This document shows positions 11,595-62,434 of a stretch of 64,000 bases of DNA, one piece after another (the first letter of the stretch is position 1; every line of letters begins with the position of its first letter). Where the stretch lies: positions 62,001 through 126,000 of IMG/VR virus record IMGVR_UViG_3300027747_002221. One strand, 5' to 3'. The position numbers and the translations under genes were made by a program. The notes under the pieces are model-generated. The model saw only the letters and a program-made list of their open reading frames with translations. It did no database searches and was not told where the DNA came from.

Positions 11595-12188
11595 TTATTT
11601 CCACTTGGGCCCGTGAATCCAACCTACCAAAGCTTTTCTTGTTCCTTTAGTTACAGGCTTAACTTCGTGTAATGTATATGATGGAAAAAACGTAATTGCT
11701 CCCTTTTCTTTAGCAATTGGAAAGGGTTCTTGAGATGTGATTAGATATGTTTGACCACCTTCGTATTCGGCAGGATCAGTCAATTGCATGGTAAAACTTA
11801 ATTTTCTAGGATATTGTCCTGCACCCTGAAAGTGATGGTCAACGTGAGCATCATAGAAGTCACCCTCATTATATACTGAGAACTGTAAATTTTCTATATG
11901 GTTAAGATCAAATCCAAACCATTGACTGTTTGCTGATAATACTACGTCTGTTAATTTTCTAAACAACCAAGCATTTTCTGCAGTAGTAGGAATCCACGAA
12001 ATCTTTGTCTTTCGTATTTCAGGATTTGCACCGCCAGCTTTGTCAAATGTACCACCTACTTGGGCATCCCCAATTTCTAAAGAGTCACCTAACTCTATAA
12101 TACTTTTGATCATATCATCATCAAAGATATTTTGATAGTAACAATATGCGTTGATTTGATGTGTATGTAGTTGCCATTCATTTGCCAT
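11595..12188 (-). CDS. 2OG-Fe(II) oxygenase (prolyl-hydroxylase-like)
   Basis: Y..HVD, RKLS, Y.GG, FPS..LHEV.PV..G.R..LV.W; start trimmed to MANE. Confidence 0.9.
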   Translation of the reverse strand: MANEWQLHTHQINAYCYYQNIFDDDMIKSIIELGDSLEIGDAQVGGTFDKAGGANPEIRKTKISWIPTTAENAWLFRKLTDVVLSANSQWFGFDLNHIENLQFSVYNEGDFYDAHVDHHFQGAGQYPRKLSFTMQLTDPAEYEGGQTYLITSQEPFPIAKEKGAITFFPSYTLHEVKPVTKGTRKALVGWIHGPKWK

Positions 12189-12189
12189 T

Positions 12190-13908
12190 TTATAATCCTT
12201 GTATTCTAGAAAAGTTTTGGTACTTCTCAAATTTTATAACACTTCTAAATTTATCAAAAAGAAGATCTCCTTTGTGACTAATGACAAAAACATTAGTCTC
12301 CTCTCCTAAAGTATTTATTAGGTTCATTACGTAGTCTGTGCCGTTAGCATCTAAAGAAGAGTCAAAAACCTCATCAAGTAATAGAAGGTTTGTGCTAGCA
12401 CAATTCTTCATTTTGGCGATTGTTCTCCATGTAAATAATAATGCTAAATCAATACGTTGTTTTTCACCTTCACTAAATGAAGCGTATGAGAATTCATCTC
12501 TATGTCTTGATTTAATAGATTCACTAAAAGTTTCATCTAATTCAAAATGACAAAAGAAATCCATTGCCTGTAAATATTTGTTTACAAGTTTATTAATTAC
12601 GGGCAAATACTGACGGATGATCTTAGTCTTAATACCGGTGTCCTTGAGAAGTATGGATGCGATATCGAGGTAATGTTTATCTTCATTAAGCTTCGTTTTA
12701 TCATCTGCATGCGAGACAACTTCCTTTGCCAAAATTTTGAGCTTCCTCTTTTCATCTTCCAGGTTTGTCGTATCTCCAGTGTCTCCTGCCAATTCGTCTT
12801 GTAATTTTTGAATATAGCTTTGTGAGGCAATAATTCTGGAATTGAGTTGTATGATATTGCCCTGATGTTCAGAGATTTTTGTTTCGATCTCAGCAATCTC
12901 ATTAAGTCTAGTTTCAGTATCGTTAAGTTGCTCGGTAAGGGTTTGTATTGCTGTTTGTACTTCTTCGAGTTTATGTGTGTGAAGTGCGATTGCGCTGTGT
13001 TTGAGATCAGGTACCAAATCTTGGCTACATGTCGGGCAAAGGTCATGTTCGTGGTAAAATTGTATGCTACTTTCCTGTACCTTAATTCGTTCGGTAAGTT
13101 TTCTAAGCAAAGTTCCCATTTCCGTATATCTGTCACGTTTCTCAGAAGAGTCTTGTATCGAGGATTCGAGATTTCCCTTCGCTCCCCTTTCTGCATCGAC
13201 CAAGGATGTAAGCTGTGATACTTCCTGATTCGATTCAAGTATTCGCTTTTGTACATCATCTACTTTCCTTTGTTTATCATTTTCTAATGTGCCAATATAT
13301 TGCTGTTGCAATTTAACTTTGTTTTTACCAAGTTCAATCTTAGTATCTATGTCTGTTATTTTAGTTTTAATTTCAATGTTCTTATCTTTAAGAACAGAAT
13401 TCATCACAGTAAAAATTTGAATATCTAAAATATCTTCAATAATTTCTCTTCTATGTCCCAACGGCAATTGCATAAAAGGAGTAAATGATGCACTACCTAA
13501 AATAACAATTTGAGTAAAAGATTTATAATTTAATTTTAGAATAGCGTCTTCAAGATATTTTTGATAGTCCTTAGATGCAGCGTCCTGATTCAATAAGGTT
13601 CCGTTAACATATATCTCAAATATTCCAGGTTTAATACCTCGAACAATTCTATAATCCTTTGAGCCAATAGAAAATTCTAATTCTACCTGTAAATTTTTAC
13701 CATTAATACTGTTCATCAACTGGGGTTTATTGATACTTCTAAATGGTTTATTAAATAAGCAGAAACAAATAGCGTCAAGAATAGTACTTTTGCCGGCACC
13801 ATTTTCGCCCACTACAAGTGTCGTAGTTGCTTTATCTAATTTTACTTCTGTGAATTGTGCGCCCGTGGATAAGAAATTTTTCCATTTAACTTTACTAAAT
13901 CTTATCAT
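12190..13908 (-). CDS. 46: Recombination endonuclease subunit gp46 (Rad50/SbcC-like)
   Basis: KNFLSTG, GENGAGKS, zinc hook CPTC, FSEGEKQR, LLLDEVFD, ISH. Confidence 0.97.
   Translation of the reverse strand: MIRFSKVKWKNFLSTGAQFTEVKLDKATTTLVVGENGAGKSTILDAICFCLFNKPFRSINKPQLMNSINGKNLQVELEFSIGSKDYRIVRGIKPGIFEIYVNGTLLNQDAASKDYQKYLEDAILKLNYKSFTQIVILGSASFTPFMQLPLGHRREIIEDILDIQIFTVMNSVLKDKNIEIKTKITDIDTKIELGKNKVKLQQQYIGTLENDKQRKVDDVQKRILESNQEVSQLTSLVDAERGAKGNLESSIQDSSEKRDRYTEMGTLLRKLTERIKVQESSIQFYHEHDLCPTCSQDLVPDLKHSAIALHTHKLEEVQTAIQTLTEQLNDTETRLNEIAEIETKISEHQGNIIQLNSRIIASQSYIQKLQDELAGDTGDTTNLEDEKRKLKILAKEVVSHADDKTKLNEDKHYLDIASILLKDTGIKTKIIRQYLPVINKLVNKYLQAMDFFCHFELDETFSESIKSRHRDEFSYASFSEGEKQRIDLALLFTWRTIAKMKNCASTNLLLLDEVFDSSLDANGTDYVMNLINTLGEETNVFVISHKGDLLFDKFRSVIKFEKYQNFSRIQGL
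12597..13259 (-). CDS. Candidate overprinted gene (+1 frame) inside gp46, basic 220-aa protein
   Basis: Stop-free for 220 codons; AAGGA RBS before ATGATG; gp46 synonymous codons in this interval avoid creating +1-frame stops. Confidence 0.45.
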   Translation of the reverse strand: MMYKSEYLNRIRKYHSLHPWSMQKGERREISNPRYKTLLRNVTDIRKWELCLENLPNELRYRKVAYNFTTNMTFARHVAKIWYLISNTAQSHFTHINSKKYKQQYKPLPSNLTILKLDLMRLLRSKQKSLNIRAISYNSIPELLPHKAIFKNYKTNWQETLEIRQTWKMKRGSSKFWQRKLSRMQMIKRSLMKINITSISHPYFSRTPVLRLRSSVSICP

Positions 13909-14969
13909 ACTTCCTCATAGTGTTGTGCCTCAACATAAAGTGTTTTTAAAATTCCCTTTAGTCTTTCTTTATCTGCATCTGTTTCAATACTATCCACATA
14001 ATTGGACAATAATGTCATAGTATCTTCTAAATCAATATTTTCATCTATTGCTTCAGATTCAAACTCAGAAAAATCCTCAATAATTTTTAATTCAATTGGA
14101 TTTTCCTTATAGATTGCTTCTACAAATTTATCAAACTTATAGAAGTCTTTTTTATTAACAACAATAATTTTGATTAGCTTAGAATTAAATTTTGTGATGT
14201 CGATAGACAACGGATCTTCTTTTTCGTCATCATAGTAATATTTCTCAAAAATAGTATTTGTATTTTTAATAAATTCTAGGTCCAATGTCTTAGTATCAAA
14301 GATATGAAATCCACGGTCATCCTCAAAGTCATTCCAGAATAATTGATATGGATTGCCTAGATACTGCACATTACCTCGACCATGCTTATGGTGAAAATGT
14401 CCTGAACATACTAGTTTAAAATCTTTAAACAGCGCAGGATCAAATCCGTCGTGTCCTAGATGCGCATCCTGCCCTTTATACATTATAAAACCAGCAAGCT
14501 CTAAATGACCAAAGCAAACAGTTGCTACTTTACCCTCAATCATTTTTGTGGTATGTTCATAATTATCTGTACATATCCATGGCATTAACAGTATCTTTAA
14601 ACCATCATAGTTTACTACTTGTGCTTTATCGTATGTTCTGATATTTGGATATTCTCCCAATAATAAACTAGGGGAATTTACATCATTAGTATTTTTATAG
14701 AATGTATCATGATTGCCGATAATCATGTCCATATCTATACCACGAGATTCTACTTGTTCAAAGAAATATTTTTTACAATTGCTTAATGAATTAAAATTGA
14801 TATATTTTCTACGATCAAAGCAATCGCCTAGATGTATGATCTGAGTAATTTCTCTTTTATCTAATTCGGGAAAAAATATTTCATCATAAAATTTTTTAAA
14901 ATAAGTATCAAATTGTTGCGAATCTGATCTTGCACCGAAATGAGTATCAGTTACTAACGCTATCTTCAT
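13905..14969 (-). CDS. 47: Recombination endonuclease subunit gp47 (Mre11/SbcD-like)
   Basis: DTHFG, LGDCFD.R, GNHD, GHLEL, SGHFH, YLGNPY. Confidence 0.97.
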   Translation of the reverse strand: MKIALVTDTHFGARSDSQQFDTYFKKFYDEIFFPELDKREITQIIHLGDCFDRRKYINFNSLSNCKKYFFEQVESRGIDMDMIIGNHDTFYKNTNDVNSPSLLLGEYPNIRTYDKAQVVNYDGLKILLMPWICTDNYEHTTKMIEGKVATVCFGHLELAGFIMYKGQDAHLGHDGFDPALFKDFKLVCSGHFHHKHGRGNVQYLGNPYQLFWNDFEDDRGFHIFDTKTLDLEFIKNTNTIFEKYYYDDEKEDPLSIDITKFNSKLIKIIVVNKKDFYKFDKFVEAIYKENPIELKIIEDFSEFESEAIDENIDLEDTMTLLSNYVDSIETDADKERLKGILKTLYVEAQHYEEV

Positions 14970-15426
14970 CCACGTACTCCCAAGTTGAATCTCCTTTTTT
15001 AATTACGGATGCAACAAAAGTCAAATGCTCAGGTATATTTCCGCTCCAATTTTTTGGACCAATCAAACTCATTTGATTTTTATCGAGATATGTATTTAAA
15101 TATATGTGGTATTCTTTCCCATAAACAGGATTAAAAGAAAACATTGTTCCATGCACTAAATCTGTGGCATCAAGTCTACTTACCAATTGTTTTGCTTGTT
15201 CTTGTAGTATCTCAACCATTTGCATGATTCTATCATATTCTTGTTTGGCATGTTCTTTTGCAACATTTAATGATATGTCTTTTTGATCTTCAACTTTTAC
15301 AGGAGCAAAAAATGAGGAGCCGACTTCTACAGGATATTCGCTACTACTACGATTAATAAAGGGCACCAATTGTTCCCTAATTATGGCATCTCTACTATTA
15401 ACACCCTTCATTACATTACTTGGCAT
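14947..15426 (-). CDS. DUF2452-like protein
   Basis: YPVEVG...F.P, coiled coil, F.PV.GK.YH.Y, LIGP..W, D.TW. Confidence 0.6.
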   Translation of the reverse strand: MPSNVMKGVNSRDAIIREQLVPFINRSSSEYPVEVGSSFFAPVKVEDQKDISLNVAKEHAKQEYDRIMQMVEILQEQAKQLVSRLDATDLVHGTMFSFNPVYGKEYHIYLNTYLDKNQMSLIGPKNWSGNIPEHLTFVASVIKKGDSTWEYVDEDSVSN

Positions 15427-15454: not shown

Positions 15455-15904
15455 TTAGCCTTCGTAAATAGCTGAGTTAGCACCATGTTCTGCACATTCA
15501 ACTTTAACACAATAACAACGATTATTAGATGCATTTCTGATTAACTGATCCGCAAAGTTAAATGCATGTTCAGCAAACTTCTCTACACCCACCCCATCAA
15601 AGATGCGGATCTCTGCCAAGTCCAAGGCTTCAAGTTCCTGGAACTTGGCCAGATGTGGATCTGCTTTATCCAGGGCCAGCTTATGATCAAAGTGATCTTC
15701 CAACCATGCCTTGAGTGGTTTAAGACCACCAAAATCTACTGCCCAATTTTTGTTGTCTAGGGCATCGCATCCAAATGTAAAAGTAAATGCTAAACTATAA
15801 CCATGCAGCAAATGGCAATGACTATGATCTGCGTTAGGTTGTCTAAATACAGCACTTAAACCAATGTTGTGCCCGTAATGTTTTGTTGAGAAATATTTAG
15901 CCAT
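15455..15904 (-). CDS. queD: 6-carboxy-5,6,7,8-tetrahydropterin synthase
   Basis: C..LHGY, WAVDFGGLK, FDH, terminal E in VECAEH. Confidence 0.9.
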   Translation of the reverse strand: MAKYFSTKHYGHNIGLSAVFRQPNADHSHCHLLHGYSLAFTFTFGCDALDNKNWAVDFGGLKPLKAWLEDHFDHKLALDKADPHLAKFQELEALDLAEIRIFDGVGVEKFAEHAFNFADQLIRNASNNRCYCVKVECAEHGANSAIYEG

Positions 15905-15924
15905 CTCTTGCCTCTAATGAGTAA

Positions 15925-15980
15925 GTTTGATGACATGCAGAATTTATATAGCGGGGTGAATGTCATTTAAAGACCGCTTT
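15925..15980 (-). promoter_or_regulatory. Candidate preQ-type riboswitch / H-type pseudoknot upstream of queD
   Basis: P1 AGCGG/CCGCU; loop AUGACAU pairs with downstream AUGUCAU (7 bp); A-rich tail AUAUAAA. Confidence 0.5.
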
Positions 15981-16978
15981 TTTAATCTATGATAATATTT
16001 AGAGTTATACCAATCGTATAACGTTTCTATAATATCATTTAATTTTCTTTTAGGTTTCCACCCAGTATCTGCTAATAATTTTTCTGCACTAGCAATTAGT
16101 GTTGCCGGATCGCCTTTTCTTCGTACATCTATATGACATATAATTCGGTCGTTTATTGCTTCGTTATTGATTAAAAAATCTTCAACTGCAGTAAACACCT
16201 CAAGATTCGAATGACCCTTTAATGTTCCTATATTATATATCCCTTCAATATCTTTGTCAATAGCTAAAACATGAGCATCGGCTATATCTGTTACATGGAT
16301 ATAATCTCTAACACAAGTACCATCTCGTGTAAGAAAGTCTGCGCCATTAATAGTAAAATCATTACCTTGTAAAGCGGCTTCAAACAATTTCGCAAATATA
16401 TGTGTGGCGTCGGGTTCTTGCCCATGTACCCCACCTTCAACTGCGCCACATGCATTAAAATATCTATATGACACATACTTCAATCCGTATGCAACTTTAA
16501 ATCTCTCTAACATCATTTCTGTCATTAGTTTAGATTCACCATATGGAGATATTGGTTTAGTTTCAGAAGCCTCAGTCAATATCATACCTATCGGCTCACC
16601 ATAAACTGCAGCACTGCTACTAAAAACAAACTTAATATTAGGTGCCCACCGACGTATGTAATCTAAATACTTCAATGTTTTTGCCACATTATTATTAAAA
16701 TATTCTGAAGGATTCTCTACACTCGGTCCTACTAAACTTGTTCCTGCACAATGTATAACAGCAACAGGGTTGCGCTCAAGGTGCTCCAATGAAAACGGGT
16801 GTGTAAAACATTCATTGACAAATTGATCTACATAATATTCCATATGCTTGTGTAGTTTTCTTTTGTCAATACCCACTACTTTATAACCATGTTCTTTTAA
16901 TGCAATACATGTAGCGCCACCGATATAGCCGGCAGCACCTGTTACTATAACAGTATTAGTATTTTGATTCTGAGACAT
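15944..16978 (-). CDS. galE: UDP-glucose 4-epimerase
   Basis: VTGAAGYIG, FSSSAAVYG, PYGESK, RYFNACGA, DGTCVRDYIHV.D. Confidence 0.92.
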   Translation of the reverse strand: MSQNQNTNTVIVTGAAGYIGGATCIALKEHGYKVVGIDKRKLHKHMEYYVDQFVNECFTHPFSLEHLERNPVAVIHCAGTSLVGPSVENPSEYFNNNVAKTLKYLDYIRRWAPNIKFVFSSSAAVYGEPIGMILTEASETKPISPYGESKLMTEMMLERFKVAYGLKYVSYRYFNACGAVEGGVHGQEPDATHIFAKLFEAALQGNDFTINGADFLTRDGTCVRDYIHVTDIADAHVLAIDKDIEGIYNIGTLKGHSNLEVFTAVEDFLINNEAINDRIICHIDVRRKGDPATLIASAEKLLADTGWKPKRKLNDIIETLYDWYNSKYYHRLKKRSLNDIHPAI

Positions 16979-18125
16979 TGTTTCTATAATCCTTAGTATT
17001 ACGATACCATTTCTCAGATCCATCAATCATAATGTCAATACATCTGTCAATAGTTCCAGTAGTCCAATTAGATAATTGTCCCATTTTCTTTCTTGGTTTA
17101 ACTAATAAATTATCTAGTTTATTTTTAACATCTTCCATAGACCAAGGAATATATAAACATTCCGCGTCATTAGCAAATGACTCAGGGAAAGATCTATAGG
17201 CGGGATACAAACAATTTGTACCAAGTGCATCTGCTTCTGATGCTGTGTTACTTACCCAATCTTGTAAAGCGCAATTAAACAATACTCGAGAATCTGCCAA
17301 CAATTCATAATATTCATTCTTTTTAAGATTTTCATAGATCTTAAAATTAGAAGTTTTTTCTAATTCCCTTGCGCGATCTAAATACTTTTGATCGTTACTA
17401 CGTAATGGACCGCCCGATAAAACAGCAAACTCTACATCTCGATTATACTTACCATAGTCCTCAACTAGATCCATAAAGAATCCTGGTTGCTTTTCCTGAT
17501 CGAATCTAGCAGCAAACACCACTCGCTTTTTACGAGTAATGAATGGTTTAATTTCAGCAATACGACTTTGTACTTCATCTTTATCAAATGCTAATCCGGA
17601 GATATTATAGATTGGTGCTTTCCAACCTGCGATCCTCATATGTGCAACCATCTCTTCATTCGATGCAAGAATACCTGTTACCCAAGTATCACACATTTTT
17701 TCATAATGCCCCATCCATTCCTGCATATCCCATACATGAAGGAAATCATCTGGGTCTATTGTCTGTGCAAGACAACGAACATAAATCTCAGGTTGATATT
17801 CCCAAGGTAATTGATCCACAATGTAGGGAATTGCTTCAATGCCGGGCGTAAACATATCCTCAAAGAAAATAGTATCGTTCCAGGTAATCTCACCCGACTT
17901 CATTTTTTTAACAAGATTAGCCATCTGCGTTAAAGAATAATAACTACGACCATGTGCATCAAGCACCTGACCTGTTACGATAGATTTGGAATCGTCAAGA
18001 ATATCACCGTGTATAATTTCATAATCAATTCCTCTGCGTTTAAATGCCGCTTCACTCCATTGCTGAAGTTGTAAAGTATATCGACCTTCATAAGGCTCTA
18101 AACCCATATAATATAACTTACTCAT
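16956..18125 (-). CDS. Glycosyltransferase (GT-B, GT4-like)
   Basis: VFAARFDQEKQP, YY.LL..S.VLFN.ALQD...EA.ALG...L.P.YRSFPE. Confidence 0.8.
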   Translation of the reverse strand: MSKLYYMGLEPYEGRYTLQLQQWSEAAFKRRGIDYEIIHGDILDDSKSIVTGQVLDAHGRSYYSLTQMANLVKKMKSGEITWNDTIFFEDMFTPGIEAIPYIVDQLPWEYQPEIYVRCLAQTIDPDDFLHVWDMQEWMGHYEKMCDTWVTGILASNEEMVAHMRIAGWKAPIYNISGLAFDKDEVQSRIAEIKPFITRKKRVVFAARFDQEKQPGFFMDLVEDYGKYNRDVEFAVLSGGPLRSNDQKYLDRARELEKTSNFKIYENLKKNEYYELLADSRVLFNCALQDWVSNTASEADALGTNCLYPAYRSFPESFANDAECLYIPWSMEDVKNKLDNLLVKPRKKMGQLSNWTTGTIDRCIDIMIDGSEKWYRNTKDYRNNVSESKY

Positions 18126-18517
18126 TATCTCTCCTCAAAAACAAGTCTGCATCCATTCTCACCATCTTCTGATACTTCTATAGTATAACATCTTGAAGGC
18201 CATTGCTCAAGACATCTGGCATACAATTCTCTTGCCATCATTTCGCATGATTTATAATCTAATTGTAATGTGCCATCAGAATACCATCGTTCCATAATAC
18301 GCTTTGCCTGAATAAATTCAACATCTCTGTTATCATGAAACACTTCCATTTCAACTTTAAAATGAAAAATATGCCTATGAGGCGTACCTAAAAAGGAAAC
18401 ATCTAACCAATCACCTGTAGCTAACTTGGGGTCAGTTGCAGCTGCAGGATACTTATGGATACCTTCTTTACGAAAGGTTGCCCATATATAACTTTTATTT
18501 AGTGTAAACATACTCAT
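18125..18517 (-). CDS. QueD-paralogous T-fold protein (DpdL-like, putative CDG decarboxylase)
   Basis: EGIH, LGTPHRHIF (LxxxHRHxF rather than QueD CxxxHGH), SCEMMA, VSEDGENG; adjacent to dpdA. Confidence 0.7.
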   Translation of the reverse strand: MSMFTLNKSYIWATFRKEGIHKYPAAATDPKLATGDWLDVSFLGTPHRHIFHFKVEMEVFHDNRDVEFIQAKRIMERWYSDGTLQLDYKSCEMMARELYARCLEQWPSRCYTIEVSEDGENGCRLVFEER

Positions 18518-19803
18518 CCAAATAACTCCTCAAGTGAAGATGGAGCCACAGCATTGACTGGCTCCGAATCCATAAATTTACCGACATGCTTTTCCCAATA
18601 AAGAAAATCCTCGTTTGTCTTTACATCAAATAATGTAGAGTATTCGTTTTCACAACCTTTGTCTCTGCAGAATCTTAAGAAATTTTCTTTTGAATTCATT
18701 AGTTCAGAAACATCCATTGTAAAGTTATGCACATTAGTTAAAATAAATGCCAATCTTGCTTTCATTACATCAATGAATTTGCCACCTTGTTCTAAATATA
18801 GACCAACCGCAATATTCATTAACTTGTGATATTCCTCGGGCGTATATTCTGTGCCACATACAGAATTAATCTCACTAACAACTGTTCTATAAATGTTAGA
18901 ATATTCTCTTCCCATTTTTACTGAAGAACCGCCATAATCACCTGGGCTATTTTTCTTACAGTGTGAGAAGTAAAACAATCCATTGTCCAATGACATAGAA
19001 TGTGTTGTAGAATCATACGAGATATCTACACCATCATATAGACCAGTTTGACTAAATAGCAAATAAGGTAAAATACGTTTAAGTGCACCTACACCTAAGA
19101 CGTGCAAATGAAATGGTCTTTCGAATGGAACAGAATTAACATAAAATGCCCGTTTAACATCTTCAAGGGGTCCCATACCCAATGCAGCTGATCCCATGGC
19201 AACACCACCGATACGATGATGTAGTTCTTTAGGTATTTCAGCTAACATACATTCTGCCCATTTAGCATAAGTATCTGCACCCGAACCTTGCAAAATGGCA
19301 AATGGTTTACACTTGCTCTTTAATGAATCAAATTTTAGAATTTGATCTTTAACATTTCTGCCTGTTGCTCTCGCATAAGACTCAAAATTTTCCATGTCAA
19401 CATATCTACGCTTAGTATCAATCTTTGCTGATACACCACTAGCAGATGTGGATTTTACTGGAATCTCATCAAACGCCATACCAATGTCAGCATATGTGCC
19501 TTGATTCTCATATACTTTGTTTCTTGTCTCTGGAGTATTCTGCAATCCTCGAGTAATAATTTGCAATCCCCCAGAGTCAGCATGAATATTTTTAATTGCT
19601 GGTCTAAACTTCTGCAACTTATTACCAAAGTTCTTTTCTGTAAATCCATTATACAATAATGAGAATTGGTGATTATTTTTATTATGAACAGTTTTATTAA
19701 TTAGATCAATAATCATTTGTAATGTCTCTGGATCATTACATTGTTCTGCACCCAGTCTCAGATATGCTGGACCTGATATTACATATTCTAAAATTTTACT
19801 CAT
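18514..19803 (-). CDS. dpdA: DpdA-like DNA 7-deazaguanine transglycosylase (TGT fold)
   Basis: TGT motifs in order: HADSGGLQ, FDEIP, ILQG, GVAMG, HLHVLG, SYDSTT; no tRNA-TGT zinc motif; que-gene context. Confidence 0.8.
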   Translation of the reverse strand: MSKILEYVISGPAYLRLGAEQCNDPETLQMIIDLINKTVHNKNNHQFSLLYNGFTEKNFGNKLQKFRPAIKNIHADSGGLQIITRGLQNTPETRNKVYENQGTYADIGMAFDEIPVKSTSASGVSAKIDTKRRYVDMENFESYARATGRNVKDQILKFDSLKSKCKPFAILQGSGADTYAKWAECMLAEIPKELHHRIGGVAMGSAALGMGPLEDVKRAFYVNSVPFERPFHLHVLGVGALKRILPYLLFSQTGLYDGVDISYDSTTHSMSLDNGLFYFSHCKKNSPGDYGGSSVKMGREYSNIYRTVVSEINSVCGTEYTPEEYHKLMNIAVGLYLEQGGKFIDVMKARLAFILTNVHNFTMDVSELMNSKENFLRFCRDKGCENEYSTLFDVKTNEDFLYWEKHVGKFMDSEPVNAVAPSSLEELFG

Positions 19804-21164
19804 GCGAATAAGCTTTCTAAAGTATCTGTTTCTTTTTCAGATGGTATGAAGTTTGGATCTTTTGCCAAGTATGTGTCTTTGTCTGTATAAATTATATTAT
19901 ACTTTGACTTATTTGTCAATACACTTTTGACATCATCTATTGCTAAGAATGACCTATTTAGTATGCGAACAAAGTCAATATATTTAATTTCGGAATACTC
20001 ATTTATTTTTGCAGAATCTGATTTTGATGTGACCGAAGGGGCGTATGATTCTACAAAGTCTTTCCAATACTTTGCTGTGCCCGAATCCAAATCTTTAATA
20101 TATTGTAGTGCACCATTACCATACCATTTTTCAGGTTTCATTCCATAAACAGCCTTAATAGCTTCGCCTGCTTCTGATACTGGTTTTCTAATATAATATT
20201 TTTTATCGAAGTTTGTTACCCATTCCGATTTGTCAATAACAACACATGGCATATGACCAAGACATTCAAAGAATGTAAATGGATAATTTTCTCGTAAAGA
20301 AGGATTAAAATGAACTTTTGCAGATTTAATAAAGTCTACTTTTTCGTCACCAACAACTCCTGACTTAATTTCATAATTAGTAATTTCCAATTCTGCGAGA
20401 CGAGCTTCGAATTTTTTCTTACCATTACTATTAGTAATAATCTTTGCAGGCAATCCTGTTTCTTTTATAATTTTAAGAAATGCTTCAGGATTTTTTCTAT
20501 CTTCCCAACGACCAATATAAAGTACACCCTCTCTTGTTCCATTATTTTCTACAAGGAGACCTCGTTCAGACATAGGCATAGGTAATTTTTTAACATTGAT
20601 TCCCCCGTTGCCTGAGATTTCATTCACGTTACGATCAGATTGCGTACCAATATAACAATTTTCAAGATTCATTAAATTATTAAAGAACTCATTGCAACTT
20701 TCACTAAACACCCCTTTGAATTTTCTAGTGTCACGGAACACCATACTTTCCTCATGTGTGTAGAATACAACTGGGATATATTTGTTTAGATCAAAAGATA
20801 AAGCAGCAGGCATTGCTTCTAATGAATTACATACTATCATATCATATAGATTAGTATTAAATGCTTTCATTATAGCATTCCTAAAATTGAGCATCTTCTC
20901 AAAATTAATAGAATCAGTAAATGCAAATGTGCCGGTATGATTCTTATATGACATAGGCGCATCCGAAGTGATTATGTTAGCACCTAAAGACTCAACCAGT
21001 GCACCGAAATCGTTACTTGACGCCTTATCTAAAATTAAATCAACTTTCCAATTTAAGTCTTTAGCCATCTCAGTAAAGCCTTTAGCAAATTGCCCTATAC
21101 CTCCGTGGGGTACAAGATGTTGATCACTAATACAAAAAGCAATACGCTTACTATATATTTTCAT
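19800..21164 (-). CDS. Glycosyltransferase (GT-B, GT4-like)
   Basis: PHGGIGQF, LYIGRWEDRKNPE, NPSLRENYPFTFFE. Confidence 0.82.
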   Translation of the reverse strand: MKIYSKRIAFCISDQHLVPHGGIGQFAKGFTEMAKDLNWKVDLILDKASSNDFGALVESLGANIITSDAPMSYKNHTGTFAFTDSINFEKMLNFRNAIMKAFNTNLYDMIVCNSLEAMPAALSFDLNKYIPVVFYTHEESMVFRDTRKFKGVFSESCNEFFNNLMNLENCYIGTQSDRNVNEISGNGGINVKKLPMPMSERGLLVENNGTREGVLYIGRWEDRKNPEAFLKIIKETGLPAKIITNSNGKKKFEARLAELEITNYEIKSGVVGDEKVDFIKSAKVHFNPSLRENYPFTFFECLGHMPCVVIDKSEWVTNFDKKYYIRKPVSEAGEAIKAVYGMKPEKWYGNGALQYIKDLDSGTAKYWKDFVESYAPSVTSKSDSAKINEYSEIKYIDFVRILNRSFLAIDDVKSVLTNKSKYNIIYTDKDTYLAKDPNFIPSEKETDTLESLFA

Positions 21165-21684: not shown

Positions 21685-22620
21685 CTATTGTAATTCTTTC
21701 ACCCATTGTTCCACGTAGTTAGACCAATCATAAGATTTGGCATGTTCTCTTATACTATAACATCTTTCTCTATATTTTTCTGGTCTATCCCTATAGTATT
21801 TTAAAGCATTTACTGCAAATTCCATAAATTCGTTTTCTTCGATTGGTACAGAAATGCCCCCGAAAATACCAACTTTATCGTTCCACCATCCGACACTAGT
21901 ACCAATAACTAATTTACCTGCGGCACCTGCTTCTAATAAAGGCAAACTACCACCTTCTTCAAAACTAGATACAATAATAGCATCAACTGCTTTATAAAAA
22001 CCTGGCATAGTAACAAAACTATTATGATAATTACTTGCTACCCTAAATTCTAACCCTGCTTTTTCTGTAGCTTCACTTGCAAGGTAACCTCTTTTTTTAT
22101 ATCTAGGTTGCGATATAGGACTGTCTATCATTTCTTGAGTAAATTCATTGCGCCCATGATATGCACTGGCATACCCTACTACACGAAGTTGTTCATTCGG
22201 TTCAGTATAAAAAGAATTATAAGTAATACCGATAGGATAAACGACAGGTTCTCTAGGTATACCTATGGTTTTACTATAATCTTTTAAAAAATTACTAACA
22301 ACACCAAAGTTTTTAACATGATTAAAATCTTCGAAACCATATTTATAACCATATTCAGTTAAATCCAAAGTAGCATGACCTATAACAATACACCGCTCTA
22401 AAGGAATACTAAAAGAATTTTTTAATACTGCAAGCCCGTGGGGGTTTGTTACCCAGAAATCTATTAACAAATCTAATTCACGTATTTCTTCTACAGAATA
22501 TATTTTATCCCAAGGAAGTAAATTACAGTTATATCCATAGTTCCAAAGATATTTAAATAGACCATAATGAATAGATCCCAGTGCCCATTCATTATCAAAT
22601 AAAAAAACTACATTTTTCAC
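21685..22620 (-). CDS. Glycosyltransferase (GT-B-like)
   Basis: KKRG, FYKAVDAIIVSSFEEGGSLPLLEAGAAGKLVIGT.VG, YDWS. Confidence 0.8.
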   Translation of the reverse strand: MKNVVFLFDNEWALGSIHYGLFKYLWNYGYNCNLLPWDKIYSVEEIRELDLLIDFWVTNPHGLAVLKNSFSIPLERCIVIGHATLDLTEYGYKYGFEDFNHVKNFGVVSNFLKDYSKTIGIPREPVVYPIGITYNSFYTEPNEQLRVVGYASAYHGRNEFTQEMIDSPISQPRYKKRGYLASEATEKAGLEFRVASNYHNSFVTMPGFYKAVDAIIVSSFEEGGSLPLLEAGAAGKLVIGTSVGWWNDKVGIFGGISVPIEENEFMEFAVNALKYYRDRPEKYRERCYSIREHAKSYDWSNYVEQWVKELQ

Positions 22621-23297
22621 TTACCGCACATTCTTGCAATACTTAAAAATTCATTTCTTGCTGATGGATCTGTTTTAAATCCGCCACCTAAACGAACTGT
22701 AACTGTGGATGAACCTGTATCTTCAACCCCTCTAGATTTGACACAGTAATGTTGGGCGTCAATCATGACAGCAACATCCTCAGTATCAAGAATAAATTGA
22801 AGTGTATGAAAAATTTGTTCTGTTAGACGTTCTTGAATTTGCGGGCGTTTACTAAAATATTCTACAATACGATTGATCTTGGAGAGTCCAAGAACTCGTG
22901 CTTTCGGAACATATGCCACAGTAGCAACACCGTCAATTACTACAAAATGATGCTCACAATTGCTTTGAACATTTACATTTCTTTCTACAACCATTTCGTT
23001 GTAGTTCATTTTATTGTCTACTGTTGTACATTTAGGAAATGCATCATAGTCCAATCCCCAGAAAATTTCATTAACATACATCTTAGCAACACGGTTTGGT
23101 GTTTCTATTAGACTATCATCTGTTAAATCTAATCCCAATGTTCGCATAATAGTACTAAAAGCTTTTTCTATAAGTTCAATCTTTATTTTGCGATCTATAC
23201 CATTGTTTTCGTAAGGTGTTTCAACACCCATTTTAACTAGATGTTCATGAACCTTTAGACCAAGTTCAGAGTCAGTTTTTGTTTTGTTGTATGACAT
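22617..23297 (-). CDS. folE: GTP cyclohydrolase I
   Basis: ETP.RVAKMY, CEHH, GLSKINR, RPQIQERLT, HYCVKSRGV. Confidence 0.97.
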   Translation of the reverse strand: MSYNKTKTDSELGLKVHEHLVKMGVETPYENNGIDRKIKIELIEKAFSTIMRTLGLDLTDDSLIETPNRVAKMYVNEIFWGLDYDAFPKCTTVDNKMNYNEMVVERNVNVQSNCEHHFVVIDGVATVAYVPKARVLGLSKINRIVEYFSKRPQIQERLTEQIFHTLQFILDTEDVAVMIDAQHYCVKSRGVEDTGSSTVTVRLGGGFKTDPSARNEFLSIARMCGK

Positions 23298-23584: not shown

Positions 23585-24427
23585 TTATGTTCCCCATTCG
23601 TTTTTGAACAATGGGACTTGTAGTCTGTCACTATATCGCCAGCCTTTTTTCATTGCCAATTCTGCAACTGTTCTGTTATTAAGATTATAAAGTTCTGGAA
23701 CACCGCCACACGGCATAAGATATACAGGACCTTTAAAACCCTTTTTACTATATTCATTTACTGCTTGTTCCGCTTCTTCTGCATCTTCTTTAGTTGCTAT
23801 CACAAACTTCAAATAAGTAAAGCCAGTATTGTAATATTGTTGAACAACATCAGAGCAAATAGCATCTTCCCAACTCTCACCACTGATACTTAGTTTAGGA
23901 CTAACACTAAACGTCAGACAATGTAGGAAACGATGCTTCTTCCAATCATTTAAGAAAGTAACTAATTCAGATTCTAACAACTGTGTACCATTAGTTTCAA
24001 ATGTTATTTCTTGTAAGCCACGCATATTATCATGTGATAATAAATCGGGATAAGCACGTTGCCAACCTAGTAGCGGTTCACCACCCGTGATAACCAAATG
24101 CTCATCTTTCCAACGACCATGAGGGAGTAAATCGGTAATAGTATCAACAATAGTATTGGTGTCGAGAACAGGACTGAGATGTTTGAAGCGTGGATCCCAA
24201 CTCGCATAACTATCACATCCAGTAGATACAAGTGGTAGTGATTTATAAGATTTAAACTTTTCTCCGTCCACCGCAAAACGCTCAACACTTTTTTCTCCCT
24301 TGGACATTCCAAAGCCATCACATTTAAAGTTGCAACCGAATGTTCTCAAAAAAACAGAGGGTACGCCCATATAACGACCCTCGCCCTGTATACTATAAAA
24401 TAGTTCAGATATTTTCAGCTTGCTCAT
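23585..24427 (-). CDS. queE: 7-carboxy-7-deazaguanine synthase (radical SAM)
   Basis: ELFYSIQGEG, FLRTFGCNFKC...(insert)...GCDS, ITGGEP, ETNGT, SVSPK; start trimmed to MSKL. Confidence 0.92.
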   Translation of the reverse strand: MSKLKISELFYSIQGEGRYMGVPSVFLRTFGCNFKCDGFGMSKGEKSVERFAVDGEKFKSYKSLPLVSTGCDSYASWDPRFKHLSPVLDTNTIVDTITDLLPHGRWKDEHLVITGGEPLLGWQRAYPDLLSHDNMRGLQEITFETNGTQLLESELVTFLNDWKKHRFLHCLTFSVSPKLSISGESWEDAICSDVVQQYYNTGFTYLKFVIATKEDAEEAEQAVNEYSKKGFKGPVYLMPCGGVPELYNLNNRTVAELAMKKGWRYSDRLQVPLFKNEWGT

Positions 24428-24686
24428 ATATTGTAGACCATTCCCTAAGTTTATCAAATTTTCTATGTTGCGCTTCTTTGACTTGTAGATAATCTACAAT
24501 ACCATTATCGTAGCATAGTTCAATCATTGCTATAAGATCACCAATTTCTTCAGTCAATCGTTGTCGATTGGTAGCACCATTATATTCACCATCTATTCCA
24601 AAGCGTAAACATTTTGAAATTGCTTGTGTTACTTCTGCACATTCTTCTTGAAGAATAAGCATAACTTCTTTTTTAGAATCATTCAT
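24405..24686 (-). CDS. MazG-like nucleotide pyrophosphohydrolase
   Basis: EECAEV.QAISK..RFG, EEIGDL. Confidence 0.8.
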   Translation of the reverse strand: MNDSKKEVMLILQEECAEVTQAISKCLRFGIDGEYNGATNRQRLTEEIGDLIAMIELCYDNGIVDYLQVKEAQHRKFDKLREWSTIYEQAENI

Positions 24687-24717
24687 AATATAAAGTATTT
24701 AGTTGTTAATATTGTCT

Positions 24718-24746
24718 ATTATATAATATTTAGTCAATCATGTCAA
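24718..24746 (-). promoter_or_regulatory. Consensus sigma70 promoter TTGACA-17-TATAAT heading the deazaguanine cluster
   Basis: Minus strand TTGACA tgattgactaaatatta TATAAT, ~30 nt before mazG-like ATG. Confidence 0.8.
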
Positions 24747-25368
24747 TAAAAGAATTATCTTTTTCTACCAATTTCTTTTTTCTTGTTTTCGTTTCTGAGG
24801 GGGTTTCCCGTCTTTCGGGATCTATATTGTCCAATTGTTTTTTCAAATAATCCACAAGTTGCCTACTTGTTTCTGAATCATCACTATTTTGAATAATCGA
24901 ATCTAAATCTAAATTTTCAATAATTTTATATTTAGTTGCCTGATGCTTTTTTTCTTTTTGGATTCTGCGGATAAAGGCAAAGTAAATAATTTGCGTATAA
25001 TATGCAAACGGATTAGATGATTTTGCTGGGTCAAATTTTGTGGCAGCCGTCAAACAATTTTCTATACCATCAGAAACCATATCATCTTTAAATGTATAAT
25101 TAATAAAATTTGATTTATATGATAAGTGCGTAGCAATTTTAATAAAACATTCGCCTATGTACCTTGGTACTTGGGGAATCTGTTCATTCTTTTCCTTTGC
25201 AGCATCTATACTAGTTTTGTAATCTATAAGTGCAGCTAAGAATTTTTTATTATCTACGTAATGTGAGGTTTGAGGAATCTCAGTGGAGTCTTTTTGTATT
25301 TCTACCGACTCGACCAATAATGATTCCTTCTCCGTATTCTTCAGTTTCTTTGTCTTCATTTGTTTCAT
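24730..25368 (-). CDS. 55: Late-transcription sigma factor gp55 (start uncertain)
   Basis: HYVDNK.F, YIGECF.KIA.HLS.K.NF.NY, DM.SDGIENC, NPFAYYTQI.Y.AF.RRI.KEK. Confidence 0.95.
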   Translation of the reverse strand: MKQMKTKKLKNTEKESLLVESVEIQKDSTEIPQTSHYVDNKKFLAALIDYKTSIDAAKEKNEQIPQVPRYIGECFIKIATHLSYKSNFINYTFKDDMVSDGIENCLTAATKFDPAKSSNPFAYYTQIIYFAFIRRIQKEKKHQATKYKIIENLDLDSIIQNSDDSETSRQLVDYLKKQLDNIDPERRETPSETKTRKKKLVEKDNSFIDMID

Positions 25369-25759
25369 CTCCTAATCTATTTAAAAATTCTTCAATCGTT
25401 TCTTCACCTGTTTCAATAACATCCTCATCATCGTCCGGAATAAGTAAGTCTTCTTCCTTGTCCCGTTCAGATAGATAAGTTAAATAATTATTTTTTAAAT
25501 TTTCTTTTATGTTTATTACAAGCACAATTTGACTTGTTGGAATTGTATAAACTTCCTCACCAGAAAAACTAAATAATGGATACATAATATACGATTCCAC
25601 TACGCCCCTAGAAGAAGGCATACGTATTGCAGATAAGATAACAGGCTGGGTTACTTGTATAATCTTTCTATCGTAAATATCCTCACAATTATCTGTTGTC
25701 ATACAAATGATATTATCACCTGAAGATAATTTTAAATATTTGTAGTAAAGATCTTCCAT
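25280..25759 (-). CDS. Conserved T4-like hypothetical protein (Sm-like N-domain, acidic tail)
   Basis: KLSSGDNII; usual position between uvsW and gp55. Confidence 0.7.
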   Translation of the reverse strand: MEDLYYKYLKLSSGDNIICMTTDNCEDIYDRKIIQVTQPVILSAIRMPSSRGVVESYIMYPLFSFSGEEVYTIPTSQIVLVINIKENLKNNYLTYLSERDKEEDLLIPDDDEDVIETGEETIEEFLNRLGDETNEDKETEEYGEGIIIGRVGRNTKRLH

Positions 25760-27240
25760 TATATTTTTACCTTTACTAATTTGTAGTTGAAATGCTCATC
25801 ATTGTATATTTTAATCCGTTCAACCATATGGAGTAAAGTATAATTCTTTTTACTTTTCCATGTTAGGTCATCCGCAATATCATAAAGGTTACATGATGTT
25901 TTAGTTTCGCTTGTTCTCAAACCTCTACCTATAGATTGTAAATTTCTAATTCTAGATTTTGACGGAGATGCAAAAATAATATTATGTAGATTTTTAATAT
26001 TTATTCCTGTAGAGAATGTTCCATAGCTAGCAACAATAATAGCATCAGGTTCTAGTTCTGTAATTCTACGGATATCCTCGCGTTGTTCTGTATCTGTTCC
26101 ACCGAATACAAAAAAGACTTTTCTATTTTCCGCTTTTTCCTTAATCATCTCATATAATGGTTTGCCGTGCTTTTCAACATATTGGAATAATACTAAAGTA
26201 TTACCCGTCTGCTTTAACGCAAGATTACGTATAAATTTATTTCTTGGTTCATGCTGAACTATAAAATCCATCTCATCTTGATATGACTTGCCCTTTATTC
26301 CTTTTCTCAATTCGTCGCTGTATTCTAATATTATATTATAAATCTCAAGATTTGCCAACTGGTTATCCGAAATAAGTTTCTTAGTTGTGGTAACTTTGTA
26401 TACCGCACCAAATAGTCCTTCAAGAACTAACTTATGTGTTTTGGTTCCATCCAATGTTCCAGTAGTACCAATTCTATAGGGTGATGTAGTACATTTATTT
26501 AGAATACTTGTTAAAGACTTGGCTTTAAAATTATGTGCCTCGTCCCCATAAATTACTTTAAAATCTTTAAAGAAAGGTTTGGGTAGTTTATATAACGATT
26601 GCCATGTACTAATAACAACATCATATTCATTGGATTTTTCGTGACCTCCGTAAATACGATGGCAATGCTCAGATGTTTTCCAATTATTCAAACAAGAATA
26701 ATCTTGGAAATCCGAATACATTTGTTCTACGAGGGAGGTTGTAGGTACAAGGATTAATTGTCGTCTACTGTATCTTTCGTGCCAACGAATAAGACAATAG
26801 ATTATAAGGGATTTTCCTGAACCAGTGGGAGATAGCAAAAGGCGTCTTCCATCTTTAATAGATTGAAAAACTGCATCTACTTGGTAATCTCGAATTTCTA
26901 TAGGCTTTCCCTTTGAGCCTATATTTAAATCTTCACAAAATTTTCTAACAATATCGTAAGTTACGGCATCGCATTCCTGTACATAATTACTGTAATCTAT
27001 AGTATAATCTCTTTCGTCACAGAATCTTTCTAGATATTCTTTTAATCCAACATACAGTTCCTGCGTGAACATAGAATATAGACGAACCTTGCCGTCCCAC
27101 ATACGAGACTTATAGAGGGGATGAAACTTTGCTCCGGGTACATCAAATGAAAAATGATCATTTAATTCCTGTCCAAGAGAAGGTTCACATTTTACTCTAA
27201 GATAAACTTCATCTTTTTTCGATAATACTATATCTGCCAT
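25759..27240 (-). CDS. uvsW: UvsW DNA helicase
   Basis: WDGK.RL, RDYQ, SPTGSGKS, DEAH, GTTGT, QSIGR.LR. Confidence 0.96.
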   Translation of the reverse strand: MADIVLSKKDEVYLRVKCEPSLGQELNDHFSFDVPGAKFHPLYKSRMWDGKVRLYSMFTQELYVGLKEYLERFCDERDYTIDYSNYVQECDAVTYDIVRKFCEDLNIGSKGKPIEIRDYQVDAVFQSIKDGRRLLLSPTGSGKSLIIYCLIRWHERYSRRQLILVPTTSLVEQMYSDFQDYSCLNNWKTSEHCHRIYGGHEKSNEYDVVISTWQSLYKLPKPFFKDFKVIYGDEAHNFKAKSLTSILNKCTTSPYRIGTTGTLDGTKTHKLVLEGLFGAVYKVTTTKKLISDNQLANLEIYNIILEYSDELRKGIKGKSYQDEMDFIVQHEPRNKFIRNLALKQTGNTLVLFQYVEKHGKPLYEMIKEKAENRKVFFVFGGTDTEQREDIRRITELEPDAIIVASYGTFSTGINIKNLHNIIFASPSKSRIRNLQSIGRGLRTSETKTSCNLYDIADDLTWKSKKNYTLLHMVERIKIYNDEHFNYKLVKVKI

Positions 27241-59866: not shown

Positions 59867-62434
59867 TTATGCTAAATTTACCAAAGATTTCGAAACAGGT
59901 GTATGATTAGCAAATGTCTGTACTGGAGGGTTGGATGTTTTAACTATTGCCCCGTTTGCAGTTAAGAACGCAATGTGTATCCACGCCGATCTTAATTTAT
60001 TATTTCCAGACTCAAACGCATATTCCAGAATAATTTGTCTATGTGGAATATTTTGTACTATCCATTGAGCTATGTCGCTGTAATCTTTAAATCTAGTATT
60101 TGTAAATTTTATATCTGCAGCCGCACCTAATCCATGATCACTTGTCTCAGAATTACTCCCAGTAACTATAGTTGTTACTGGTCTAAACACACTATTAATT
60201 TTCATATCAGGAAATTTTGCCTTAATAGGATCTAAACAATTTACAGTTAATTGTTTTAAGTTATATACTATTTGTTTCTCTGTCAATCCTCGTTGAGCAA
60301 CCAACCCGCCATCTTTTAACATATCATCCAACGTAAATATTCTGTTATCTTTATTGGATAATATAAATGATCTTGGGAAGAATGTAAATTTATTAATATC
60401 CGCATCATTTACTTTTATTACAGGAGTAGCTGCAGAAAGTATTGCCTCACCCTCAACTACTTTAGGAACAATACTAGTGTTAATTAAACCTAGTTGTTCT
60501 AAGCTTAATTTATAGGCATCTGTTCCCGCATCCCCGGCGTCATGGTAGAATGTTGCTTTGGATACTACCTCTCTTTGTAATAAAGGAATAGGTGTTTTAT
60601 CTGGTGATTTTTTCTCAGGTAATTTATCTATTGGACGATCTATTTGCTGAATACTCACGGCACCTGATTGTTGTTTTACGGTAGCGCCTTCTATTAAAGT
60701 TTCTAATCCCCCGTTTATACTCATAGTAGATGCTCTACCAGATTCCATTAAGAAATCTCCGGAAGCTTTTTGAACAATATCTCCATCTTTGGAGTAAAAA
60801 TTTATTCCTTTACCCTGCATACTAATGGGACCCTCGGATACTAGACTAAAACTCTTAGCTGCGGTAACCCTTAAATTTTCGGATATGATACTTGTTTGGC
60901 CGGCACTTTGTACCAACGTATTTCCATGACTTGTTACTGCCAGGTCACCCTCTACTTGAATTTTTGCGTCATCCTTAACTAATATACTAGTTTTGCCTTC
61001 GACCGTTATACATTGAGCCCCTTTAACATATACTAGATTATTACGATCTATAACCTCATAATTATCACCTACGGTTTTTCTCACCATTGATCCATTTACG
61101 TCAATCTCAATATATGTGCCTGTCTTATGAAATATATGTATTCTTTCTGCGCCCGGTGTGCTATCTAATTCTATTAAATGCCCGGCCTCAGTTTCTGTAA
61201 CTTGATTATACGGGTATCCCGCACCATACGCAGAGTCGGGTTCGTTCCATGTTTGTTTACTATTGGCTAATTGAATATTGTCTATTTTCTTATTCTTTTT
61301 TACGTTAAAACTTTTATGTGTTACATCACCGACTGCTAATTTATTAATATCACTAACCCCCGTATAATCTAAGCTTGGATATTTTTTATTTGGATCTTGA
61401 AATCCTTTTATATTATTTAAAGCAGAATTATTTAAAGCAGCATTGTTTGTATTTGTATTATTTGTACTTGGTAAAAAATTACCTGCGGCGTCTAGTTTAT
61501 ATTCAAAATCTCTTGCATTTCCGCCTAGAGCAGTATTAACGGCAACAAAATAATCCTTAGCTAATTTTCCATTAATATCTTTTTTATTTAATTTGTCTGC
61601 ATTAGTTACACCCATTGCTAATGATGTGGCTAATAATCCAGCAACATCTTTTGGATCATCTTTATCTGAAATTTTTCCCATTTGTAACAGAGTATTATAA
61701 TTAATTTTGGATGCCGCAACAACTGCAGATTCCTGTATTGCAGTATCTTCTAAAAATTTTGTTTTACTTGTTATGCCATCCTTACCTGTCCAATTATTAG
61801 AATCAGCAGTCCATGTAGCTGAAACTATATCTTCCGGACATCTTTTAACATATCCCAAATCAATTAAAGCATTGACACTTAACTGATACTTACCTAAATC
61901 TCCTGCAGAACTTTCCTTAGCATAATTTCCACCTGATACTTTTTCAGAAAATGTTTTAAGAAATGTATTTAAATCTGTTTGTGTCAACGGACCTAAATTA
62001 GGTTGAGAATTTTTGTCAGTTTTTACCACATAGGTATTATCCTGATTAACTAAAGCTTCCCCGCCGGAACTTTTAACAACATTATTTATGGATTTATCCT
62101 GTGCTTGTCTAACCAATGATGCTACAGACGGAGAGGGTTTGCCCGCAAGTGTTCCTATAATTAACGGGCGTTGCATCTCCGATCCATCCATAAACCAACC
62201 CACAACCCAAGTTCCTGGTACTATACCTACAGGTGCAGAACCTACTCCTGACGTTGCTGCAGATGTTATAGACTGCATAGGTAGGGCCCATGGTAAATCT
62301 GAGGTAGGCAATGCTGTAGTATCCGCAGTATGATGACCGAATACTCTTACCCGGCATCTTCCTAGTTTTTCTGGATCGTCTCTATCCTCAACAACTCCAG
62401 TCCACCAGACAAGCTCATTATTACCAAATATCAT
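59867..62434 (-). CDS. 5: Baseplate hub/needle gp5 with lysozyme-like insert and C-terminal peptidase M15
   Basis: WW.GVVEDR.DP..LGR.RVR..G.H, LPWA; YPYN.V.ETE.GH..E.D.TP..ERI; SDH..G.AADI...WIH. Confidence 0.9.
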   Translation of the reverse strand: MIFGNNELVWWTGVVEDRDDPEKLGRCRVRVFGHHTADTTALPTSDLPWALPMQSITSAATSGVGSAPVGIVPGTWVVGWFMDGSEMQRPLIIGTLAGKPSPSVASLVRQAQDKSINNVVKSSGGEALVNQDNTYVVKTDKNSQPNLGPLTQTDLNTFLKTFSEKVSGGNYAKESSAGDLGKYQLSVNALIDLGYVKRCPEDIVSATWTADSNNWTGKDGITSKTKFLEDTAIQESAVVAASKINYNTLLQMGKISDKDDPKDVAGLLATSLAMGVTNADKLNKKDINGKLAKDYFVAVNTALGGNARDFEYKLDAAGNFLPSTNNTNTNNAALNNSALNNIKGFQDPNKKYPSLDYTGVSDINKLAVGDVTHKSFNVKKNKKIDNIQLANSKQTWNEPDSAYGAGYPYNQVTETEAGHLIELDSTPGAERIHIFHKTGTYIEIDVNGSMVRKTVGDNYEVIDRNNLVYVKGAQCITVEGKTSILVKDDAKIQVEGDLAVTSHGNTLVQSAGQTSIISENLRVTAAKSFSLVSEGPISMQGKGINFYSKDGDIVQKASGDFLMESGRASTMSINGGLETLIEGATVKQQSGAVSIQQIDRPIDKLPEKKSPDKTPIPLLQREVVSKATFYHDAGDAGTDAYKLSLEQLGLINTSIVPKVVEGEAILSAATPVIKVNDADINKFTFFPRSFILSNKDNRIFTLDDMLKDGGLVAQRGLTEKQIVYNLKQLTVNCLDPIKAKFPDMKINSVFRPVTTIVTGSNSETSDHGLGAAADIKFTNTRFKDYSDIAQWIVQNIPHRQIILEYAFESGNNKLRSAWIHIAFLTANGAIVKTSNPPVQTFANHTPVSKSLVNLA

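Follow-up and report, generated by a model that had tools for sequence, protein, structure and literature searches.

A riboswitch-like pseudoknot upstream of the phage gene queD

A small RNA pseudoknot lies in front of a phage gene for making 7-deazaguanine, and it recurs upstream of queD with compensatory mutations in more than 200 uncultured freshwater phage DNA fragments in IMG/VR. It matches no RNA family in Rfam 15, within the searches described below, and looks like a new metabolite-sensing switch that is built like the class I preQ1 riboswitch but is distinct from it. The element was found on the minus strand of a 64,000-nucleotide stretch of IMG/VR record IMGVR_UViG_3300027747_002221 (positions 62,001 to 126,000), referred to here in full as the window. 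An earlier note, made from the sequence alone, had described a 5-bp P1, a perfectly complementary 7-bp P2 and an A-rich tail, and had proposed a variant preQ1-I-like riboswitch for CDG, preQ0 or 7-deazaguanine that feedback-controls QueD and is dual-coding with galE. The pseudoknot is present exactly as that note described it, with every coordinate correct. Its reading of the element holds only in part, as the scaffold, the link to queD and the guess that the ligand is not preQ1 itself are supported, whereas membership of the preQ1-I class, feedback repression and a meaningful dual-coding role are not.

A conserved and covarying pseudoknot

The features of the element and of its surroundings are listed in Table 1. 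P1 encloses a 19-nt loop, and we found that P2 extends beyond the seven pairs described previously by two further pairs across a U.C mismatch. The downstream ORF belongs to the PTPS/QueD family (Pfam PF01242), and its closest relatives are phage proteins annotated as QueD, at 46–54% identity. The upstream ORF is a GalE-type epimerase (above the cut-off of TIGR01179) whose stop codon lies inside the element. The family models end near residue 342–350 of 360, so that the overlapping part, ...KKRSLNDIHPAI*, is a non-conserved C-terminal tail. In most relatives the element is intergenic or sits directly behind a promoter, and the overlap with galE is thus incidental.

Table 1. Positions of the pseudoknot, the queD leader and neighboring genes in the window.
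Feature	Position	Strand	Description
P1 5' strand	15978–15974	minus	AGCGG; G15974 forms the invariant closing G-C pair
L1	15973–15967	minus	UCUUUAA; first nucleotide variable, then invariant C and U and a variable linker
P2 5' strand	15966–15957	minus	AUGACAU (15966–15960), invariant U15959 (mismatch partner), then C15958 and A15957 (extension)
L2	15956–15955	minus	CC; C15955 is the invariant cytosine directly 5' of the P1 3' strand
P1 3' strand	15954–15950	minus	CCGCU
L3	15949–15940	minus	AUAUAAAUUC; A/U-rich, ends in a conserved YUC, contains the galE-like stop codon TAA (15946–15944)
P2 3' strand	15939–15930	minus	U15939 (pairs with A15957), G15938 (pairs with C15958), C15937 (mismatch with U15959), then AUGUCAU (15936–15930)
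Anti-start segment (inferred alternative pairing)	15934–15929	minus	GUCAUC; overlaps the P2 3' strand and can pair with GAUGGC at 15905–15900
Translation initiation region of queD	15915–15900	minus	SD AGAGG (15915–15911); AUG (15904–15902)
queD	15904–15455	minus	149 aa; Cx3HGY motif as in other phage QueD proteins
DUF2452 gene	14947–15426	minus	follows queD
GalE-like epimerase ORF	15944–17026	minus	C-terminal tail runs into the element
Candidate promoter of the queD leader transcript	16232–16260	minus	perfect 12/12 sigma-70 consensus match (TTGACA-17-TATAAT) inside galE, about 255 nt upstream of the element
Glycosyltransferase-like gene	16956–18125	minus
DpdL-like gene	18125–18517	minus	130 aa, QueD paralogue; contains LGTPHRHIF
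DpdA-like transglycosylase gene	18514–19803	minus	429 aa
Glycosyltransferase-like gene	19800–21164	minus
Glycosyltransferase-like gene	21685–22620	minus
FolE	22617–23297	minus
QueE	23585–24457	minus
T4-like core genes	11595–14969 and 24405–27240	minus	gp46/gp47-like SbcCD, 2OG-Fe(II) oxygenase, MazG, gp55-like sigma factor, UvsW helicase

To determine whether the match exceeds chance, IMG/VR was searched with the QueD protein, which returned 80 loci at 87–100% protein identity. Nearly all carry the same architecture directly upstream of queD, although the upstream neighbor differs. A MAFFT alignment of 58 distinct copies (A1), scored with the pseudoknot as described in the earlier note, has 89.8% of cells paired, against 67.2% in column shuffles and 38–55% when partners are slid by 1–3 columns, and 10 of 12 pairs show changes on both sides. 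Over the scorings of A1, the values span 89.8–91.4% paired against 67–72% in shuffles and 32–55% in slid controls, with 10–11 pairs showing double changes.

We then scanned IMG/VR with a DNA pattern made only of conserved loop letters and the two G-C pairs nearest the junction, leaving the inner P1 positions and all of P2 free. This recovered at least 120 loci, and about 116 of 120 have a fully paired P1 together with a P2. Aligned to a covariance model built from A1, these hits (A2) give 87.9% paired cells and compensatory changes in 11 of 12 pairs. P1 is 97–99% paired, with double compensatory changes in 4 of 5 pairs, and its closing G-C pair is invariant in 58/58 and 91/91 sequences of the two sets. 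Over both sets, 10–11 of 12–14 pairs show double changes. Among 148 unique aptamers there are 13 P1 and 49 P2 sequence combinations. Many of the sequences are related, so the shuffle statistics overstate independence and are not probabilities, but the slid controls and the number of distinct compensated pair types leave little doubt that both helices are selected. The earlier note had named absence of conservation or covariation upstream of homologous queD genes among its grounds for rejecting the element, and both are present.

The covariance model finds a single copy in the window, at 56 bits with the next best hit at 12.8 bits, and none before folE or queE; the model includes a locus identical to that of the window (L001, in our numbering of the related loci), so this score is not independent evidence.

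The alignments refine the anatomy of the element. The invariant UCA after the P2 5' strand and the invariant UGC before the P2 3' strand are not loops, as C pairs with G in 58 of 58 sequences and A-U is replaced by G-C in four sequences from at least two lineages, with no unpaired case. The motif thus consists of a 5-bp P1 closed by an invariant G-C pair; an L1 of N-C-U plus 0–7 nt; a P2 with a variable core of 4–7 bp, an invariant U.C mismatch, and then C-G and A-U (or G-C) pairs; an L2 of 2–3 nt that always ends in C; and an A-rich L3 ending in YUC, which is 10 nt in most copies and 7 nt where P1 is shorter. The first L1 base is U in 60, C in 47 and A in 40 of 148 aptamers and is never G, whereas positions 2 and 3 are invariant. 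An attempt to show that L1 length tracks P2 length was confounded, as only contiguous pairs were counted and mismatches and bulges shorten the counted P2 and inflate L1, and it is not used here.

Distribution and genomic context

Of the 120 pattern hits, 108 are followed directly by a QueD ORF, mostly only about 40% identical to the protein of the window, and over the whole collection the QueD proteins are 35–100% identical. The element therefore spans deep QueD diversity. Three exceptions that were examined (loci L165, L172 and L180) carry one extra gene between the element and queD, these being a cupin gene, a Methyltransf_9-like gene, and a gene for a 243-aa protein that is not identified. 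In locus L200 (2657–3651) a divergent copy at 23.5 bits precedes a 306-aa protein with only a weak PTPS match. Locus L092 carries two copies about 1 kb apart (6–54 and 1000–1048), the first of which is degenerate (30.9 bits) with P1 partly broken. The commonest arrangement is folE, element, queD, queE. In 33 of 163 unique copies a TTGAY-N16-19-TANNNT promoter-like site ends 5–9 nt before P1, against 0.5% of control windows, and in those phages the transcript would begin at the foot of P1. Because the upstream gene differs among loci and is often replaced by a promoter, a recoding or coupling signal for galE is rejected.

A scan of one genome for each of 185,579 bacterial and archaeal species, with a pattern restricted to the common AGNGG P1, gave only four true hits, all on short MAG contigs and all next to queD. 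No true match was found among GenBank phages by blastn of the region and of two leader types, and the covariance model finds nothing in Rhizobium phage RHEph04 or Synechococcus phage BUCT-ZZ01. Public runs that hold the region are freshwater and lake metagenomes. Lake metatranscriptome contigs bridge the galE 3' end, the element and queD, although they are low-depth, lack strand or end information and could be DNA carry-over, and so do not settle transcript structure. These contigs pile up on the queD 5' end and leader (window 15862–15935), and their loose ends match the leaders of related phages, such that several members of this phage group appear to be present in the same RNA libraries.

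The window encodes FolE, QueE, QueD, a DpdA-like transglycosylase and a DpdL-like protein, but no QueC was detected in it, and QueC appears in only 1 of 209 related loci. Homologues of the DpdA-like protein in Xanthomonas phage X1 and Stenotrophomonas phage Moby are annotated as queuine tRNA-ribosyltransferase. The DpdL-like protein carries the LxxxHRHxF signature of DpdL, the proposed CDG decarboxylase (PMC10516641), and has homologues in Acidovorax phage ACP17 and Cellulophaga phage phiST. This is the gene set (FolE, QueD, QueE, DpdL, DpdA3) reported for phages such as phiST and ACP17 whose DNA carries 2'-deoxy-7-deazaguanine (PMC10516641), although our searches found no RNA regulator for those clusters. 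In the window the cluster is interleaved with three glycosyltransferase-like genes and the GalE-like epimerase, which raises the question of whether the modified base is further glycosylated. A DUF2452 protein travels with the cluster, following queD here and queE in other loci, and is present in 13 related loci. A xanthine-guanine phosphoribosyltransferase (XGPRT) gene sits inside the folE/queD/queE cluster in 18 related loci (for example L068:2183–2722, L165 and L180), and also in Synechococcus phage BUCT-ZZ01 (L202:5195–5656), suggesting that guanine salvage feeds the pathway.

The cluster is flanked by T4-like core genes, with best protein matches to Methylophilales phage Melnitz and T4-like cyanophages at about 50% identity. 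In T4, autoregulation of gene 32 uses a 5' pseudoknot, and it could be that a phage protein, either QueD itself or a RegA/gp32-type regulator, similarly recognizes this element as a translational operator acting on a start site through alternative pairing. We consider this unlikely, as the element is tied to queD and occurs only once in 64 kb, accompanies QueD proteins that are only 35–45% identical on contigs of varied gene order, has invariant nucleotides clustered at the helix junction as in small-molecule pockets, and matches the smallest known aptamers in size and topology.

Predicted pairing with the queD initiation region

There is no terminator-like site between the element and queD, so a transcription terminator or attenuator is rejected and control should be translational. 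The P2 3' strand does not contain the SD. Instead, it and the next few nucleotides are complementary to the initiation region in four leader types with different sequences: GUCAUC with GAUGGC in the window; UGCCAUUG(UU) with (AA)CAAUGGCA in a second type; CCAUUAU with AUAAUGG in a compact type; and CCUAUG with CAUAGG (the SD) plus UGCCG with UGGCA (the start) in the largest group. In nested MFE folds at least 3 nt of the P2 3' strand pair with positions −14 to +12 in 139 of 170 unique leaders, against 45% after shuffling of that segment, a high control value, and part of the complementarity follows from the conserved AUG-GCA start of queD. The AUG is fully paired in 52% of leaders, against 23% after shuffling. 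A cross-sequence null was uninformative because the leaders are related and share the AUG-GCA start, and was replaced by the shuffled-segment control. Predicted nearest-neighbor duplex energies are −8 to −15 kcal/mol for the alternative helix and −6 to −8 kcal/mol for P2. The window's own copy, at −8.2 against −6.8 kcal/mol, has the longest P2 and the weakest alternative helix, and its nested MFE fold already contains P2.

From these predictions we infer that anything stabilizing the pseudoknot should release the start site, which would make this an ON switch, not the feedback OFF switch proposed in the earlier note. An ON switch on a biosynthetic gene is unusual, however, and pathway products would then be illogical ligands. 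P2, with 7–10 layers, may also fold without any ligand.

A further possibility is that the element is constitutive with no sensor function, acting as a 5' stabilizer, a ribosome standby or enhancer site, or a temporal device that masks the start site only in long early transcripts, as in T4 late genes, start sites masked in early transcripts being known in T4. The stability of P2 on its own in some copies is consistent with this. In group-A leaders (L021:2972–2995, and others such as L005, L025 and L049) the SD-sequestering hairpin CCUAUG...CAUAGG also has in its loop a conserved TGCTATAAT-like box (variants TAAAAT, TACAAT and TATACT), a TGnTATAAT-like extended −10 look-alike that could start transcripts lacking the pseudoknot. 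A purely structural or temporal device is possible for some leader types, but overall it appears very improbable, as a mere stabilizer does not need strict invariance of unpaired junction nucleotides and of the U.C mismatch across very diverse phages, nor, the exceptions above aside, an exclusive association with one metabolic gene.

Relationship to preQ1-I riboswitches and candidate ligands

A search of the whole window against Rfam 15 at gathering score, and permissive scans of 111–301-nt slices around three diverged copies, gave only chance snoRNA/sRNA hits at 10–16 bits. No hit to preQ1-I (RF00522), preQ1-II (RF01054) or preQ1-III (RF02680) was obtained at E<=10 in the three copies. The models of other small pseudoknot riboswitches (SAM-II/V, guanidine-III, fluoride and NAD+-II) likewise do not match at E<=10, and their conserved loop sequences and gene associations are different, although these too use pseudoknot-based sensing with translational control through access to the initiation region, and some, such as guanidine-III and fluoride, are ON switches. 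Full-text literature searches for a queD/PTPS-associated or phage preQ1-like riboswitch found nothing relevant, and within the reach of these searches and Rfam 15 the element is undescribed.

Class I preQ1 aptamers are reviewed in PMC11625349 as H-type pseudoknots in which a conserved G-C pair forms the pocket floor and a strictly conserved cytosine just before the P1 3' strand, preceded by U in type I and by A in types II and III, pairs with preQ1. U6, the first L1 nucleotide, reads the ligand's N9-H, an L3 adenine reads the ligand edge, and the P2 3' strand buries SD nucleotides or favors a terminator. The phage element shares the minimal H-type topology (36–55 nt) with P2 formed between the P1 loop and the 3' tail, the 5-bp P1 with its G-C floor pair, the invariant cytosine (preceded mostly by U, otherwise by C or A), an A-rich L3 running along P1, and a position before a 7-deazaguanine pathway gene. 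It lacks the conserved L1 uridine. L3 is A-rich only in its first part and ends in YUC, not in the adenine that reads the ligand edge, and the UGC that follows pairs as the P2 extension. P2 is of 7–10 layers with an invariant U.C mismatch, not 3–4 bp, and its 3' strand lies 20–40 nt upstream of the SD. The element is also found essentially only on phage contigs.

It remains possible that this is a highly diverged but genuine class I riboswitch that binds preQ1 or preQ0 and represses queD by feedback, and the shared topology, floor pair, cytosine, A-rich L3 and gene association are in its favor. We regard this as unlikely given the lack of any preQ1 family match at E<=10 in the three diverged copies, the differences in L1, L3 and P2, the predicted ON logic of the leaders and the scarcity of hits in cellular genomes. 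Judged by QueC alone, without regard to QueF, preQ0 and preQ1 are moreover not expected products of these phages.

The explanation that we favor, with moderate confidence, is that the element is the aptamer of a previously uncatalogued, phage-borne, riboswitch-like pseudoknot that controls translation of queD, and of queE where that gene follows. Of the generic operational definition of a riboswitch, the element fulfils the part that calls for a conserved structured aptamer with covariation and invariant junction nucleotides, lying in cis before a metabolic gene across diverse genomes. In this view a small guanine-faced heterocycle would stack at the P1/P2 junction and pair with the invariant cytosine, as preQ1 does in preQ1-I, thereby stabilizing P2; without it, the P2 3' strand and the nucleotides after it would pair with the start codon or SD of queD. 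The analysis establishes the structure, its conservation and covariation, its link to queD, the lack of an Rfam match and, as a thermodynamic prediction only, the alternative pairing. [quoted passage not shown]

Candidate ligands with a guanine-like face fall into two groups that our data do not discriminate. The products 7-deazaguanine, CDG and preQ0 would call for OFF logic, which the leaders are not predicted to show, whereas precursors or by-products, such as guanine released by DpdA base exchange and the FolE product or other pterins, would suit ON logic. preQ1 is an unlikely ligand on the basis of gene content.

Riboswitch classes carried by viruses are rare, and our searches found none described for the 7-deazaguanine DNA-modification pathways that phages use to evade restriction. 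Separately, the window marks a T4-like freshwater phage lineage carrying the gene set reported for 7-deazaguanine DNA next to several glycosyltransferases. A more far-reaching reading, which we offer only tentatively, is that this is a riboswitch class found only in phages that senses a base of the phage's own DNA-hypermodification pathway or its guanine/pterin precursor (7-deazaguanine, CDG, free guanine released by DpdA, or the FolE product) and turns on queD and queE translation. That would make it the first ON-type relative of the preQ1-I fold and the first RNA sensor known to govern phage DNA modification. The element is abundant and small enough for direct structural work, and offers a natural comparison with the well-studied preQ1-I fold, having the same scaffold with different pocket-lining nucleotides and apparently inverted logic. 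Identification of its ligand could give a compact new sensor for 7-deazapurines, guanine or pterins, and would show which metabolite these phages monitor while they replace guanine in their DNA.
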